A DNA stretch of 64,000 nucleotides, from contig OZ218955.1 in assembly GCA_965112735.1 (NCBI GenBank), positions 2,108,001-2,172,000 of the forward strand, in the 5' to 3' direction. Made by a program: the position numbers and the translations under genes. This DNA is from Phaeosaccion multiseriatum. Its lineage: Eukaryota > Protista > Ochrophyta, other classes. The notes below the pieces were generated by a model, which saw only the letters and a program-made list of their open reading frames with translations, was not told the origin of the DNA and did not search any database. Of this stretch, positions 49,318 through 56,707 are shown piece after piece (the first letter of the stretch is position 1; every line of letters begins with the position of its first letter).

Positions 49318-52300
49318 TCACAAAAACTGCGTTGTCCTGACGGACGGACGGACGGACGGACGGACTGACTGACTGGCTGACTGACTGACTCACATGGTCA
49401 CTCCTGTAAAAGTAGTCGTCCAGCAGCAAGCGGAAGGCCTTCTCCATCCTCTCCCGCTGCCGCTCCTCCTGCCTGCGCAGAGTGATCGCCTTATCCAGCA
49501 GGGCGTCAAAGGCGAGCTGAATGTTCACAGGTCGTGCCGCCGTCATGATTGTGTACGGGCGTGCAATGCTCATGTCCTTTGCAGCGGGGGGGCTCTTGTT
49601 GCTGTGGTCGCCGGCATTACTCCGGTCCGACTTTGATCCATCTTCCCTGTTCTTGTTTCCTTCTCTCTCCCCCCCCTCTCCTCCCGTATCTCCTCCGCTC
49701 TTCTCCTTGTCCTTCTCCTCCTGCTCCTGCTGCTCCTGCTGCTCCTGCTTGATTCGCCTCTCTTCTCTCCTATTCTTGAGCGTCTCCTCCACCTGCGCAT
49801 CCTCCGATGCTTGCAAGGCGGCGGTGAAGTCCTTTATGGTCGACTCCGGCTTGACAACAAAGCCTGCTTTTGCAAGCATCTTCTCAAGCTGCCTCTTGTC
49901 GTCTCCGAACTGCTTGCGCAGGTCGTCGAGGATCTCGTCAAACACGTCTCTCCGGTCGGTGCTGGCCATTGCGTGCTTCTCCATGACTGTGTAGGCGGGC
50001 TCGTGCTCGATGGCAGGCTTGAGCTCGGACCACTTGGTGTCCGCGGTGATCATCCCACCCTCCACCTGGGCGTACATGGTACACAGCAGTACACAGTACA
50101 CATATACACAAAAGCGTGGCCACAAACCAAGGCAAGCAGGCAACATGAAGGCAGTTTAGCTTGCGTGTGTGTCGCACACTGACTGGCGCCGGATTCCTGA
50201 CTGATTGGCTGATTGACAATACTATCTGACTGACTGCCTGACCATCGACCTCCCTTCCTTCCTTCCTTCCCTCCGTGACTGCCTGGCTGACTGACAATCG
50301 ACTTCCTTCCTTCCTTCCTTCCTTCCTTCCTTCCTTCTTCCCTTCCTTCCTTCCTTCCTCCCTTCCTTCCGTCCTTCCTTCCTTCCTTCCTTCCGTCCTT
50401 CCTTCCTTTCTTCCTTCCTTCTTCCCTTCCTTCCTTCCTCCCTTCCTTCCTTCCTTCCTTCCTTCCTTCCTTCCTGCCCGTATGACTTCCTGAACGCACC
50501 TTGGTGCGCAGGAACTGCCTGAACTCCTCCCGCTGCTGCCATTCCAGCGCGAGTTGCACCTCCCTCTCCCTCTCCTTCCGCTCCTCCTCGTCCCTCTCCA
50601 GCTCGCCCACGTAATCGAGGAAGGCCGAGCGCTGGTGGCCCTCGTCCAGCTCGATGAAGAGCTCGCGCTCCTTACGGTTGGCCAATCGCAGTACCAAGTC
50701 GCTCACCTGCACAGAGCAGAGACAAGAGGGGGGTCCAGTACGTCAAGGGGGGATGGAGGGCACGACAAAAGGTTTAGGCGCAGCATGCGAGGACATGACA
50801 CTCCCCGGCAAGTGCTGAGCAGAGCAGTGCTGCCCATGGGGTGGGGGAGGGGGCTCCTGCCTCCTTCCATTCTTTCCCACGGAAATCTGACCGACTGCCT
50901 GCATCGACTGAATGTCTTAGACTGCGTAGACTGACGGACTGACTGGCTGCCTCCATCCATTTACCTGCGACCACTTGGTCTTCCACGTGATGCCCAGTTC
51001 CGGGCACTCCCTCAGGAAGCGACGAAAGGCCTCCAGGGCTCTCTCTATCACCGCCCTCCTCGCGTCCTTCTCTGACTTATTGAGCTGCGCCACAAATTCC
51101 ACAAAGTGCTCCTCCCTCTCTCGGTCGTCCTCGATGGCCAAGAAGCGCTGGTCCGAGCCCAGCATATCCTTGGCTTCTGACCAGCGGGTGCTGCCCGTGA
51201 TCTTGTCGTTCATGGCGAGCATTTGCACAAACTTCTTGGCAGCAATCGCCGCCGCCTTTCGCTTCTCTGTTATCCACACACACCACACGGTCGGGGAAGG
51301 GAGGGAGGCCATGGGGCGAGCAGAAAGACGCACGAGGAGGGGGGGGGGGCGATTCCACAGCCGCTCAGACGGAGATTTGTAGCAAATGGCAGCGGCCACC
51401 ATAAACTGACACTTCCCCAAAGTCTTTGAGTACATTCCCGAAAAAAACGAGCGGTACTCTTGCCCCCCCCCCCCCACACACACACACACAACTCCCCTCT
51501 TTACTCCACTCTACCCTCCTCTACGCACCCGTCTTCTCCTGCTTGGCTCTCTGCGTCTTGTACTCCGTGTGAGCCTGTCGCTTGGCCCCCGCCTTGAGGG
51601 CCGCCCAAATGGGGTGCCCGCTGCACAACTTCTGCACCTCACTGAAGCTGAGCTTGGAGCTCACGTCACAGTCCGCTAGCATCTGCTTGAAGGCCGCCAC
51701 GGCCTCTGCGTGGTTGGCGAACTTGGTTTTCACTGCCCCCGCCCCTGCCGCCGCTACAGCCCTCGCCGCTGCCGCCGCTTGAGCAGCCCCTGCTGCTGCC
51801 CCTGCTGTTGCTCTTGCCCCTGTCCCTGCTCCTGCTCCTGCTGTTGCTGCTGCAGGAGCATTGTTCGCGACCGTCACTGGCGGCGCTGCTGTTGCCGCTG
51901 CGACAGGAGCCGCGTTTGACACCCCTCCGGCGACCGCTGCAGCTGCTCCCAAGCCCTTCATCTGATCAGAAGCTGCAGACCCGTTAGCTACTGTGGCCGC
52001 CGCGGCCTGAGCCTGAGCGGCTGCCACGCTGTCGGACGCGGCGCCAGGAGGCAGACTGCCCTTGGCTTTGCGGGCTTTGGCGGCAGCGACTGCCTCCTCG
52101 TAGGCAACCAACTCGGGAGGCTTGACCCATACAGAGTTGACCCCGTCGCTGTAATATGCCTTGCCGTTGGGGCCTGTGTACGTCTTCCATTTGCAGGGGG
52201 GAATACCTGCCTTCTTGTCCTCCGACGCTTGCACCACCGGCGGCTTTTCGTACGTGCTCACCTGTTGAGTGAAAGGTAGAGGGGGGAGTGGGAAGGATAC

Positions 52301-52997
52301 AAAGGGCTCGTTATGAGGGTGACGGGTGGTGCAATGGTGAGGTGATGTGCTCAGCTGAGGGTGTAGGGTGCGGCTTCACGGCGGGGGGGGGGCGGGGGGG
52401 GGGGGACAACAATTCACCGACCTTTGTGACTGCATTGTAATAGTAAGGCCGACCATCGGGGGACTTGTAGGTTCCCCAATCCTCCGCACGGGAGCCAGGA
52501 GCCCCCCCCCCTGGCACTGCTGCTGCTGCCGCCGCTGCTTGTGGCTGCTGCTGCTGCTGGGGCTGCTGCTGCTGGGGCTGCTGCTGCTGCTGCTGCTGGT
52601 GCGTCTGTTGGTGTTGCTGCATGTGCTGCGGCTGCTGCATACGCTGCTGCTGCATTTGTTGGTGGTGCTGCTGCTGCATGTGTTGGTGGTGCTGCTGCTG
52701 GTGTTGCTGGCCCTGTTGCATTCCCATACCCAGGCCAGGCCGAGCACGTCCACCACCCATCGCGGTCGGCTGCTGCTGTTGCTGCTGCTGCTGCTGCGGC
52801 TGGGCCTGCTGGCCCCATCGATTTGGCCTTCTCCCAGTGGGGGCACTGCTACCGCTTGCGGAAGCCCCTGCTCCCGCTCCTCCCGCTCCCTGTAAGCCAC
52901 CTGGCATCGACAGGCTCGGCGCCGCGGCCGCTGGGGTCTTCACCACCCCAGCTGCAGTCACAGGAGCTGCGGCCTCTGGCCCTTTGCCCGACGTCAT
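47963..52997 (-). CDS. PRP40: Pre-mRNA processing factor 40 (WW + FF domains, RS tail)
   Basis: WW1 DWGTYKSPDGRPYYYNAVTK|VSTYEKP; WW2 KWKTYTGPNGKAYY..SVWVKP; FF repeats (AFKQML.., ITGSTRWSEAK, ITWKTKWSQ, ITADTKWSELK); C-terminal RS/K-rich tail with EEGEI; 7 exons. Confidence 0.9.
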
Positions 52998-53776: not shown

Positions 53777-56252
53777 TCACCCATAACGATTCTTCGTCTC
53801 CTTCTTTCTCTCCTCCGCCGCAAGCTCCTCCTCCGTCAACGGCCGAGGCTCGAAGGTCAGCGACGCCCCATTGAGGCAGTAGCGCAGTCCCGTGGTGGCT
53901 CGAGGTCCGTCTGTAAACAAGTGCCCCTCATGCGCTCCGCACTTACTGCACGCTACCTCCATCCTGTTGAACATGAGGCCTTGCTCGATGTTCTCCTTCA
54001 CAGCCTCTTCTCGCACGGGCCCGTCGAAGCTGGGCCAGCCCGTGCCAGAGTTGAACTGTTTGACGCACACAAAGTACGTGGGTCGTGGTCATGGCCATAG
54101 AGTCAAGCAGTTGCGCCGATCGATTCGGGGGGGGGGGGGGTGAGGAAGAGGATGAGGAAGAGAAGAGGGGCGGGGGGGGGGGGAGGTAGAGTCGTAAAGA
54201 GACGTATCTATCGCACAACCCTGCTCGAGCCCTTTCCCCCTCTGGAACTCTCACGCACACACACATACATAGGGAGAAGCTTACTTTGCCCCTCTTCTTC
54301 TCTCCTGTCTCAACACAGCCCAATACAGTTTGGCATTGCACCCGCCACCGACCTTGGAGGCGGATGTGAACATCTCCTGGCCGCAGCTCGCGCATTTGTA
54401 CACACCCTCCCGCTTCTCATAGTTGTACATGCTGGGAGAGTGAGAGAGTGAGAGAGGGGGAGAGGGTGAGAGAGGGGGGGAGAGAGGGAGAGGGTCGGAG
54501 AGTGAGGCACAATATGTAAGTAGAGGTCGCAGGCGGAGGCAAAGGCGGAGGCGGAGGGGGGGTGGGGAAGGAGATGATGAGTGGTGGAGCGCGAGTCATG
54601 CATAGGGAGCACGGCAAAGTGTGCGGCTGTCTCCCTCCCCCACCCCCTCAACCCATCCCTCACCCTAGCCCTCTCCTCCCTCCCTGTGTCACACACCTCG
54701 TCCACGCCAGTTCAGTCCCAGAAAGACGCATGACGTAATACTGCAGGGGGTTCAGCAGCTTGCCGCCCTTGCCCTCAGCATCGCCCGCCTTCATCACAGG
54801 GATCTCCGCCAGCAGGTCCGAGTACGCTCGCTTGGGAGCGTCGGTCTCGGCAATGACCTGGCGGCGCAGCGGGACGAATCAGCGAAGGGGATAGGAAGGA
54901 CAAAGGGAGGGTCGAGCTTCAGAAGTCGCAGGAGTCATTTCTGTTGTTCTCCTTCAATCCAGGAGCGACCCCCGTCCGCCGTCGCTTTCGAACGGAGCGC
55001 GACGAACTAACTAACCTCCACGACCTTCCCTCCTTCTCCTTCTGTTCGAGACTCCGCGAAGGCGGCCACGGCCAGCTTGGCGACCTGATGGGATGGGCAG
55101 ACAGACAGGCAGACAGACAGGAGACAAGAGAGAAAAGAGAAGCAAGAGCCAAGACAAGAGGGATAGAGAGGCAGACAGGCAGACAGACGCAGAGACAGTT
55201 CGCAATCGCAAGGGTGGGAGAGACGGGAGGGGGTGCTGTGTGAGGTGCCCACACCGGCACGATGTTGGCAATGCTCCACGCACCTGCAGCCGGCTGACCA
55301 GCCCCCCGAAGGTAGAATCTGAGGGCATTAGTTTGGCATTGTGAGTGAGCTCGAAGTCGTCCTCGGGCTTCTCCATGCCCCCTGGCCGAATGATAGTGTA
55401 GGGGATGCCGCTTGCTTGCAGGGCCAGCTCCGAGTCGTGCTTGAACTGCCGGGGGGAGGGGAGGTGGGGGGGCTTGAGGGTCTGAGAGTCAACACCCATA
55501 GACGTTGATATTGGATGGGCCACCAACAGCCACGCTAACTGTCTAGCTGTGTATGAGTGACTCGCTGAGCCATCGCCTCACCTTGAGCACTCCCCAGAAT
55601 AGGTTCAGCACAGAGGCGGGGAACCCAAACTTGCCCGCGCCCAGCGACGACACTAACACGATGTGCTTCACGCCTCCGTTCTTCCTGCGGCACATCAGGT
55701 GCAGAGTAGCGAAAAAAGAGGAGTCAGAGGAGTTGGGCGGATGGCGAAGGCCACACCAACGCGTTTGTGCACCGTGCTCACTAACCTGGCCGCCTCGATG
55801 ACTCGCTGTGTCATGACCCCGTCCACTTTGTAGGGGCCGAGTGGGTTGAAGATGTCGGTCTCTAGAGCGCCCAGCGCAATAGCCACGCCATCACAGCCCT
55901 CCATGGCTTTGGCGATGGTCTCTGCGTCGGCGCTCCCCAAGTCCATCTCGACGACCTCTCCCTTGCCAGGCAACACGTCCTTGGCTTTCTCGGCGCTGCT
56001 GGGGCGGACGGCACACTTCACCGGAACCTTCTCGCCCACGAGCTGACTCACTATCCTCCTCCCTGATCTCCCTGTCGCCCCGGCAACGAAGACTTTCGTC
56101 GCGCCCATGGACATGTCCCCACGTCTTTTTCCCGTGCTCCGTCGACTACTCACAGCTCTGTTGCTGCGCAGCTGGAAGGCCTCAGTGGGTTTCCTGGCGC
56201 AGAAACCCGCCGCAACAAACAGCAGAGACAGAGGCAAGCGTGCTCGTCTCAT
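53777..56252 (-). CDS. msrB: Predicted plastid fusion protein: Tic62-like NAD(P)-binding Rossmann domain + peptide-methionine (R)-S-oxide reductase MsrB (~439 aa)
   Basis: Exons 56252-55786, 55684-55582, 55445-55284, 55084-55016, 54857-54697, 54431-54353 and 54055-53777 are all GT-AG, in phase and total 1320 nt. Tic62-like motifs: VFVAGATGRSG, GPYKVD, LVSSLGAGKFGFPASVLNLFWGVL, YTIIRPGGME, KVVEVIAETDAP. MsrB motifs: QYYVMRLSGTE, CASC, KFNSGTGWPSF, CSKCGAHEGHLFTDGP, RYCLN. Confidence 0.9.
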
Positions 56253-56399
56253 GGTGACCCCTCTCGTCGCGATCGCTCTATTCTTTTTAATTTTTTTGTC
56301 AGCGTTTTGCCTTTTGCTCACGTGTTTCGTGCACATGTTGGTGGTACTTTAGATTCACAGCTGGAACATCAAAAAAACAAAATCAAAAACATCAAAACC

Positions 56400-56707
56400 A
56401 TGGGCATGAGACGGCTCCTCGTGCCGGTGCTAGTTCTTCGGTCTGTCTGTGCTTTCCCTCATACTTTGTCTGTACAGAGGAGGCTTAGACTGAGGAGCGG
56501 GGCGTGTAGATGTAGTAGCCGCGGCGAAAAGGACTTCTTCGGCTCAGCAAGGCGGCTGTGGGGGGTACCTTCCTCCTTGTCGTCCTCCTCCTCCTCGGCA
56601 TCCTCCTCCTCCTCGTCATCCTCCTCGTCATCCTCCTCCTCCTCCTCCTCCTCCTCTTCCTCTCCGTCCCCCTCCTCCTTCTCCCCCTCCTCCTCCTCCT
56701 CCTCCTC

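Follow-up and report, generated by a model that had tools for sequence, protein, structure and literature searches.

A predicted plastid protein of Phaeosaccion multiseriatum and other ochrophytes that joins a Tic62-like NADP(H)-binding module to a 1-Cys methionine sulfoxide reductase B

The window analysed here, a stretch of 64,000 nucleotides of contig OZ218955.1 from the ochrophyte Phaeosaccion multiseriatum, carries on its minus strand (56252..53777) a gene whose product combines a Tic62-like NADP(H)-binding domain with a methionine sulfoxide reductase B (MsrB) domain. Joining the exons by script gave seven exons and 439 residues. All six introns were of the GT..AG type, and the coding sequence of 1320 nt (439 codons plus stop) formed an open frame. 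The features of the gene are collected in Table 1.

The two domains meet inside exon 5, which runs without a stop from ..VIAETDAPKRAYSDLLAEI.. in the last helix of the Rossmann domain, through a linker of 13 residues rich in Gly, Lys, and Ala, to ..LLNPLQYYVMRLSGTE.. in the first helix of MsrB. The preliminary description of this DNA had placed the fusion inside a single exon at 54857-54697 and held that it was not a merged gene model. The exon has exactly these borders, and the protein is colinear with about 30 orthologues. Pfam profiles run on single exons gave NAD_binding_10 on exons 1-3 and SelR on exons 6-7, far beyond chance. Four public runs contained this DNA as genomic contigs from one sample, and over the 2,801 bases compared they were colinear with the window and identical to it, with the introns in place.

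Table 1. Features of the fusion gene and its predicted product, in positions of the window
Feature	Position	Strand	Remarks
Whole coding region, seven exons	53777..56252	-	End-to-end BLASTP to fusion orthologues, best E 2.5e-131
Exon 1: presequence and first half of the NAD(P)-binding domain	55786..56252	-	Exon alone: NAD_binding_10 E 1.1e-12 (48.7 bits), NmrA E 4.4e-07, Epimerase
Putative signal peptide, residues 1-25, MRRARLPLSLLFVAAGFCARKPTEA before Phe26	56178..56252	-	Kyte-Doolittle mean up to 2.4, residues 6-19
Transit-peptide-like stretch, residues 26-48	56109..56177	-	6 Arg, 1 Lys, 5 Ser, 1 Asp
Dinucleotide-binding motif GATGRSG (GxxGxxG), residues 58-64	56061..56081	-	G58, T60, G61, R62, G64 near-invariant in the fusion family
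Exon 2	55582..55684	-	Both joins gap-free against orthologues
Hydrophobic patch FGFPASVLNLFWGVL, residues 175-189	55585..55629	-	Corresponds to Brassica TIC62 positions 216-230
Exon 3	55284..55445	-	Holds the Tic62 group I type motif MEKPEDDFELTH (55341-55376)
Exon 4	55016..55084	-	Splice sites, orthologue alignment
Exon 5: end of the Tic62-like domain, 13-residue linker (54759-54797), MsrB start	54697..54857	-	One uninterrupted exon
Exon 6: first Zn-binding pair CASC (54383-54394)	54353..54431	-	SelR profile positions 22-46; both Cys invariant, 32/32
Exon 7: GTGWP (54032-54046), CSKC (53939-53950), HEGH (53921-53932), catalytic RYC (53876-53884), charged tail, stop	53777..54055	-	SelR E 1.3e-25

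The SelR profile (PF01641) scored 90.0 bits on exon 7 alone, compared with a cut-off of 24.9, and 22.8 bits on exon 6 alone. Exon 7 aligned with solved MsrBs from Burkholderia, human (MsrB3), E. coli, and Neisseria, with an E value of 2e-21 for 3cez. The MsrB motifs occupy residues 334-337 (CASC), 351-355 (GTGWP), 383-386 (CSKC), 389-392 (HEGH), and 405-407 (RYC). Among the catalytic-site residues W354, H389, H392, R405, Y406, C407, and N409 were kept, and the Zn pairs C334/C337 and C383/C386 were invariant in 31-32 of the 32 family members. The position of the resolving cysteine is held by Thr352 in the window (GTGWP), where 3cez has GCGWP and MsrB3 has GSGWP. It had been noted beforehand that the resolving cysteine was lost while both CxxC pairs and RYC were kept, and the alignment with solved MsrBs bore out every one of these residues. 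By its conserved residues, the fusion protein is a Zn-containing 1-Cys MsrB and not a member of the 2-Cys subclass.

Thr or Ser stood at the resolving position in every aligned fusion orthologue. The same holds outside the fusion: among the 120 closest unfused MsrBs, which were proteobacterial (Ramlibacter, Polaromonas, Sphingomonas), algal, and metagenomic with 61-72% identity, 119 had Thr or Ser at this position (117 Thr, 2 Ser), and the plastid-type unfused algal MsrBs of the first search all had Thr (or Ser). No plant MSRB1 was among these 120 matches listed. Because 117 of the 120 carry GTGWP, the Thr-type site predates the fusion and is a trait of the subfamily. The possibility that the 1-Cys state arose because of the fusion was thereby ruled out, so that the Thr-type site pointed out earlier is present in the protein and has no tie to its architecture. 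A similar qualification applies to HEGH, which had been called unusual. It is present in the window, while HLGH was found in all aligned fusion orthologues and in 120/120 of the closest unfused MsrBs, and it thus represents only a private change of the window lineage. An acidic residue was seen at this position in one further protein, the metagenomic algal MsrB P0230 (364 residues, HDGH), the only such case among 147 unfused MsrBs examined, in which the Leu at this place otherwise never varies.

Behind the MsrB domain, the fusion proteins of the chrysophyte clade (e.g., P0004, P0151, P0154-P0162) carry a C-terminal motif ..(E/D)Q..K(I/L)A(S/N)RLD... This motif was absent from the brown-alga and raphidophyte sequences, and the tail of the window protein is unrelated to it and rich in Glu and Lys.

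The nearest unfused relatives of the N-terminal domain were land-plant TIC62 and its green-algal homologues, with E values of about 1e-80 to 1e-84 for a profile of 17 sequences. Identity to plant TIC62 was 40-47% over about 250 residues, and the domain was colinear with pea and Brassica TIC62 throughout, up to the start of MsrB. TIC62 and the fusion share GxxGxxG, the Arg after strand 2, the block ..SLGT.KFG.PA..LNLFWGVL.WK..E.., the motif ME(R/K)P.D.Ar..TH, and the module end ..EV.AET.AP...LL... In the window the Arg after strand 2 is R83 (56004-56006), which was near-invariant in the fusion family; an Arg at this place is typical of NADP preference among short-chain dehydrogenases/reductases (SDRs). 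Both TIC62 and the fusion lack a Tyr that would precede the conserved Lys by four residues, which marks both as atypical SDRs. The nearest solved protein was At5g02240 (E 1.3e-10, 25-26% identity, template-modelling score 0.76), and no solved Tic62 was among the matches. A Foldseek search with the N-terminal part returned atypical SDRs, and the next fold neighbours were a biliverdin IX-beta/flavin reductase and uncharacterised YwnB/YlbE-like proteins.

The true Tic62 subfamily, group I, is defined by the motif E-R-P/A-T-D-x-Ar-K/G-E-T-H (PMC1847441). The window version, E-K-P-E-D-D-F-E-L-T-H, fits 6/10 specified positions, and orthologues, for example with E-R-P-T-D-D-Y-E-L-T-H, fit 8/10. Placement in group I, judged from this motif and from the annotated TIC62 best matches, is tentative. 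The hydrophobic patch FGFPASVLNLFWGVL was near-invariant across the fusion family and formed the sole loop of low confidence in the AlphaFold2 models; positions 217-233 of atTic62 have been proposed as a site of attachment to the membrane or the Tic complex (Balsera et al. 2007, PMC1847441). With plant TIC62 as the closest unfused relatives, and with the group I type motif and the patch in common, the earlier description of this domain as Tic62-like holds. MsrB likewise lies where it had been said to lie, at the position of the Ser/Pro-rich FNR-binding region, as the alignment with pea and Brassica TIC62 and the family study (PMC1847441) indicate.

The best-conserved Cys of the N-terminal domain (..VVCALGA.., 29/32) is Ile in the window and is present in unfused plant TIC62. 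As an intramolecular resolving residue for the MsrB, this Cys was considered and ruled out on these two grounds.

The protein begins with a basic start and a hydrophobic core (residues 6-19), followed by ..TEA before F26 and then by 23 residues with a single acidic one. Orthologues with complete N-termini showed xAF or xSF straight after the hydrophobic stretch (MAF, PAF, SAF, IAF, KSF, NAF). Read by hydropathy and alignment, the putative signal peptide with a TEA-F presequence named in the preliminary description is present, and the orthologues retain a hydrophobic stretch with Phe after it. Ochrophyte bipartite plastid presequences (ASAFAP type) have an ER signal peptide, then Phe, another aromatic residue or Leu at +1 of the cleavage site, and then a transit-peptide-like region. 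As judged from its residues, the presequence resembles this pattern, plastid targeting of the fusion protein is likely on this prediction, and residues 26-48 would act as the transit peptide. An in-frame ATG lies upstream at 56336, 84 nt before 56252, in an open reading frame (ORF) of 213 residues. It would add 28 basic residues and bury the signal peptide. The start at 56252 was favoured over it because the orthologues have short N-termini.

A query of 109 residues, the mature portion of exon 1, was used to look for orthologues among 1.84 billion protein representatives. The matches were weak (best 48% identity), and among them was a first fusion orthologue, P0004, of 435 residues with NAD_binding_10 at residues 51-257 and SelR at 298-412. 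Searches with P0004 and with the profile of 17 sequences, each scoring the 8000 candidates that share most words with the query, agreed on about 31 clusters that carry NAD_binding_10 and SelR in the same order. The window's own protein was absent from the protein collections searched. It showed 44-56% identity to the orthologues over both domains and was gap-free at all six exon joins. Its best match was a Chattonella transcript ORF (residues 11-417, E 2.5e-131). The family conserves GxxGxxG, R83, both CxxC pairs, GWP, HxGH, and R-Y-C, with a linker of about 6-13 residues.

Among the Phaeophyceae the fusion was found in Ectocarpus (two species), Pylaiella, Scytosiphon, Undaria, Ascophyllum, and Discosporangium (a 268-residue model with both domains), and fragments with the N-terminal domain only came from Laminaria and Choristocarpus. 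It was also found in Phaeothamnion (Phaeothamniophyceae), in Tribonema minus (KAG5191104.1 / A0A835ZI62) and T. gayanum (Trinity) of the Xanthophyceae, in Chattonella subsalsa (MMETSP0947) and Fibrocapsa japonica (A0A6U1QLD2) of the Raphidophyceae, in Hydrurales sp. CCMP1899 (MMETSP1177) and Mallomonas annulata of the Chrysophyceae/Synurophyceae, and on many freshwater and marine metagenome contigs. The ORFs of Chattonella, Fibrocapsa, Hydrurales sp., and Tribonema gayanum were derived from transcriptome assemblies, and at least two were marked 'type:complete'. Because these ORFs carry the fusion, both domains are co-transcribed in at least four species. The junction lies within one exon in Tribonema too, Ectocarpus has an intron inside the linker, and an intron after ..SRLQ is common to the window gene and Ectocarpus.

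A maximum-likelihood tree of 30 fusion proteins was split into two sides with 98/94 support. One side held the raphidophytes, xanthophytes, Phaeothamnion, brown algae, and the window; the other held the chrysophytes, synurophytes, and two deep environmental lineages. As the tree follows the accepted grouping of classes, the fusion is old and vertically inherited, and dates at least from the common ancestor of both ochrophyte groups. Among the 8000 best word-sharing candidates scored, the fusion was not found in named diatoms, pelagophytes, eustigmatophytes, haptophytes, or red or green algae, which is a lead and not proof of absence. This result agrees with Balsera et al. (2007, PMC1847441), who saw no Tic62 of group I in Thalassiosira. 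Within the same number of candidates, unfused group I type matches in named fusion-bearing taxa were only short models of 215-281 residues (one 'partial') from Choristocarpus, Chrysoparadoxa, and Laminaria. A feature search of the ESM Atlas gave only unfused NAD_binding_10 clusters, with a score of 0.87, and serves as a lead only.

The Chattonella orthologue was modelled with AlphaFold2. The full-length protein with 17 sequences gave a mean predicted local distance difference test (pLDDT) of 80.7 and a predicted template-modelling score (pTM) of 0.65, and the protein trimmed to its mature part with 27 sequences gave 86.3 and 0.69, respectively. Both domains were well folded with high pLDDT, and the MsrB part superposed on solved MsrBs with a root-mean-square deviation of about 1.2-1.3 Å in Foldseek. 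No solved chain covering both domains was among the Foldseek matches.

The architecture has been deposited many times under the names 'unnamed protein product', 'Mss4-like protein', 'MsrB domain-containing protein', and 'peptide-methionine (R)-S-oxide reductase', and the UniRef label of the Tribonema orthologue is 'Peptide methionine sulfoxide reductase B1, chloroplastic'. In the searchable literature we found nothing that joins Tic62 with methionine sulfoxide reductase or NAD_binding_10 with SelR. The main text of the study of ochrophyte chimeric plastid proteins by Dorrell (2017) does not mention the fusion, the stress transcriptome papers on brown algae name generic Msr genes only, and the Tic62 family paper (PMC1847441) is earlier than the algal data. 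The preliminary description knew of no account of this architecture and proposed to map NAD_binding_10 with SelR in ochrophytes. The architecture proved widespread there, conserved in at least five classes and already deposited, so it is not unique to the window; the absence of a description in the searchable literature stands. The modules are of known kinds, and their combination is undescribed in that literature.

Upstream of the fusion gene and head-to-head with it runs an ORF on the plus strand that probably starts at 56400. It opens with MGMRRLLVPVLVLRSVCA followed by Phe, that is, a signal peptide and then Phe, contains long poly-Ser runs, and had no Pfam match. The two start codons are 147 bp apart, and a bidirectional promoter may be common to the two genes, both of which would encode plastid-directed proteins. 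The downstream neighbour (51521-52997, minus strand) encodes a PRP40/FBP11-like protein rich in Gln and Ala, with matches to the WW (E 1.4e-05) and FF (E 4.6e-07) domains. Within the fusion gene, intron 6 (54100-54270) and intron 3 (55090-55190) are rich in C and T and contain CT/CTGT repeats and long runs of C, and intron 5 (54432-54696) is also CT-rich and of low complexity. The short-read contigs of runs X3 and X4 end within 54100-54270, and the repeats there and at 55090-55190 attract many unrelated contigs.

The gene is intact and conserved, and its product has every residue that NADP(H) binding and MsrB catalysis require. With regard to function, we lean toward the view that an intact nuclear gene encodes a plastid-directed two-domain protein, in which an NADP(H)-sensing Tic62 module places or regulates a 1-Cys MsrB that external thiols recycle. 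Once the protein had entered the plastid, Cys407 would reduce peptide Met-R-sulfoxide and turn into a sulfenate, judging from the conserved site. The sulfenate would then be recycled by external thiols, either glutathione/glutaredoxin or thioredoxin, as in other 1-Cys MsrBs. Such recycling is the default expectation because the closest unfused MsrBs are also of the Thr type. The Tic62-like module may bind NADP(H) as a sensor or tether, and the NADP+/NADPH ratio may set the location of the protein (membrane or stroma) or its partner, in parallel to plant Tic62. The redox state would then decide whether MsrB is docked to the envelope or thylakoid membrane or set free from it, and repair would be positioned or tuned rather than powered by NADPH. 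A role as sensor or tether was preferred for the module because it has neither a flavin nor the catalytic Tyr and, in the window, also lacks the Cys of ..VVCALGA... Through such a role, NADP(H) status or membrane shuttling could be coupled to methionine sulfoxide repair, a coupling that the preliminary description had likewise proposed as an inference.

Several points weigh against this view. The c-region of the presequence (..CARKPTEA before F26) is unusually charged, which makes the cleavage site uncertain. The AlphaFold2 models support no fixed inter-domain geometry, as pTM values of 0.65 and 0.69 are about those of the larger domain alone. The role as tether or sensor is carried over by analogy from land-plant Tic62. 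Transcripts with the fusion come from other species, and the gene model in the window is built from DNA. Finally, the window protein has a long branch in the tree (1.83) and 12 near-invariant positions altered, so its activity could differ from the family norm. Its private changes include Cys to Ile in ..VVCALGA.., Trp to Phe in ..WK.., ERPW to ELAW, HLGH to HEGH, and an insertion of one residue before ..TGLRYC (RP-TG to RATTG).

The fusion might instead serve co-delivery only, so that the two domains do independent jobs and are only targeted together by one presequence and made in equal amounts, with no regulatory or electronic link between them. The models fix no arrangement between the domains, both domains occur unfused elsewhere with the same key residues, and the Ectocarpus intron falls exactly in the linker, as would be expected of two joined modules. 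However, the domain order and the short linker were retained across the PX/raphidophyte and the chrysophyte/synurophyte groups, which usually signals a functional link, and the few short unfused models from fusion-bearing taxa are all that was found there of a separate group I type protein among the candidates scored. We therefore regard mere co-delivery as unlikely, though it deserves serious thought. The deviations of the window protein could also mean that its MsrB half is drifting toward loss or change of function, with the gene kept for the Tic62-like half. This fits the long branch, the altered positions, several of which fall in MsrB (ELAW, HEGH, and RATTG among them), and the HLGH kept by all 120 unfused relatives. 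Yet the catalytic Cys, Arg405, both His, Trp354, and the four Zn cysteines were kept in an intact frame, P0230 is also acidic at the position of the HEGH change, and the N-terminal domain has comparable private changes, which points to a whole protein that evolves fast. The chance of such a drift seems slim. That two adjacent genes or alternative transcripts are continuous in the DNA only is hardly credible. It is true that the public runs with this DNA are genomic contigs, but six canonical introns preserve the frame, and the idea of a merged gene model was dismissed because the junction exon is stop-free and the protein is colinear with its orthologues, including the transcriptome ORFs of four other species.

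A bolder proposal is a self-sufficient, NADPH-driven reductase, in which the Rossmann domain would reduce the Cys407 sulfenate directly or via a bound cofactor and so replace thioredoxin or glutaredoxin, in a role like that of the thioredoxin domain in bacterial PilB. A 1-Cys MsrB requires an outside reductant, the NADP-type motifs are strongly conserved, the linker is short, and the fold neighbours include an NADPH-dependent biliverdin IX-beta/flavin reductase. Nevertheless, the protein has neither a flavin domain nor a relay of redox-active cysteines, and the catalytic Tyr of SDRs is absent. The one Cys that is well conserved in the N-terminal domain is missing from the window and present in unfused TIC62, the Thr-type site, found also in 117 of the 120 unfused relatives, did not arise together with the fusion, and the pTM values give no interface. 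Flavin-free transfer of a hydride from NAD(P)H to a sulfenate has no precedent known to us, and we consider this proposal improbable. We would give an equally low rating to the wider claim that the protein is either an NADPH-powered, self-contained Msr or an MsrB whose catalytic cycle is under allosteric control by NADP(H) in the neighbouring domain, with no need of thioredoxin or glutaredoxin.

Brown algae, xanthophytes, raphidophytes, and chrysophytes have all retained the fusion, a 'Rosetta stone' that predicts a functional link of the two modules. It bears on what the part of Tic62 that binds NADP(H) does in biochemical terms, and on the positioning and recycling of plastid 1-Cys MsrBs, two processes known only for land plants. 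If the NADPH-powered or gated reading were true, the NADP(H)-binding half of plant Tic62 would gain a role as partner of plastid MSRB1. If the domains are co-targeted only, the gain is a minor one in annotation, and the vaguely named database entries deserve a two-domain description.

Compared with known systems, the fusion protein resembles land-plant TIC62 (pea, and Arabidopsis At3g18890; group I, PMC1847441) in its N-terminal NADP(H)-binding module of the atypical SDR type and in its plastid location, which is predicted for the fusion. It differs from vascular-plant TIC62 in having a complete MsrB where the latter has Ser/Pro-rich FNR-binding repeats, and from land-plant TIC62 in its predicted bipartite presequence (signal peptide and transit-like part), as used for a complex plastid. 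The repeats are confined to vascular plants (PMC1847441), so their absence from the fusion protein is no bar to group I membership. With the atypical SDR sensors NmrA (Pfam E 4e-07) and HSCARG/NMRAL1 and with At5g02240, the fusion protein has in common its fold class and the lack of the catalytic Tyr; At5g02240 is distant at 25-26% identity, and a sensor function could be assigned by analogy. Plant Tic62 itself reportedly shuttles between membrane and stroma in dependence on NADP+/NADPH (Stengel et al. 2008; Benz et al. 2009).

The MsrB half is like plant plastidial MSRB1 and other Thr-type MsrBs, as it is Zn-binding with two CxxC pairs, R-Y-C, and the Thr of GTGWP. Unlike MSRB1 it is fused and not stand-alone, and the window copy has HEGH instead of HLGH. 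Plant MSRB1 is reportedly recycled by glutaredoxin and glutathione (Tarrago et al. 2009), and for the fusion protein these or certain thioredoxins are expected. An MsrB in one chain with a redox partner is also known from bacterial MsrA-MsrB and Trx-MsrA-MsrB (PilB) proteins, and 3e0m, 5fa9, and 7e43 were among the fold matches. In PilB the thioredoxin domain serves its MsrB as reductant. In the ochrophyte protein, by contrast, the partner is a pyridine-nucleotide-binding Rossmann domain and not MsrA or a thioredoxin fold.

A Tic62-type module was also found joined to a chlorophyll a/b-binding-type domain (PF00504), in P0266 of Chloropicon mariensis (MMETSP1309) and in the metagenomic P0186, P0210, P0212, and P0256. 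This is another C-terminal appendage of the module and is apparently undescribed. Unlike the MsrB of the fusion, the Chloropicon-type tail is a membrane anchor or pigment-binding domain and not an enzyme. Together, these proteins fit a view of the Tic62 module as a reusable unit with a varying tail (FNR-docking repeats, a membrane domain, or MsrB), in which the tail decides what sits at the membrane.

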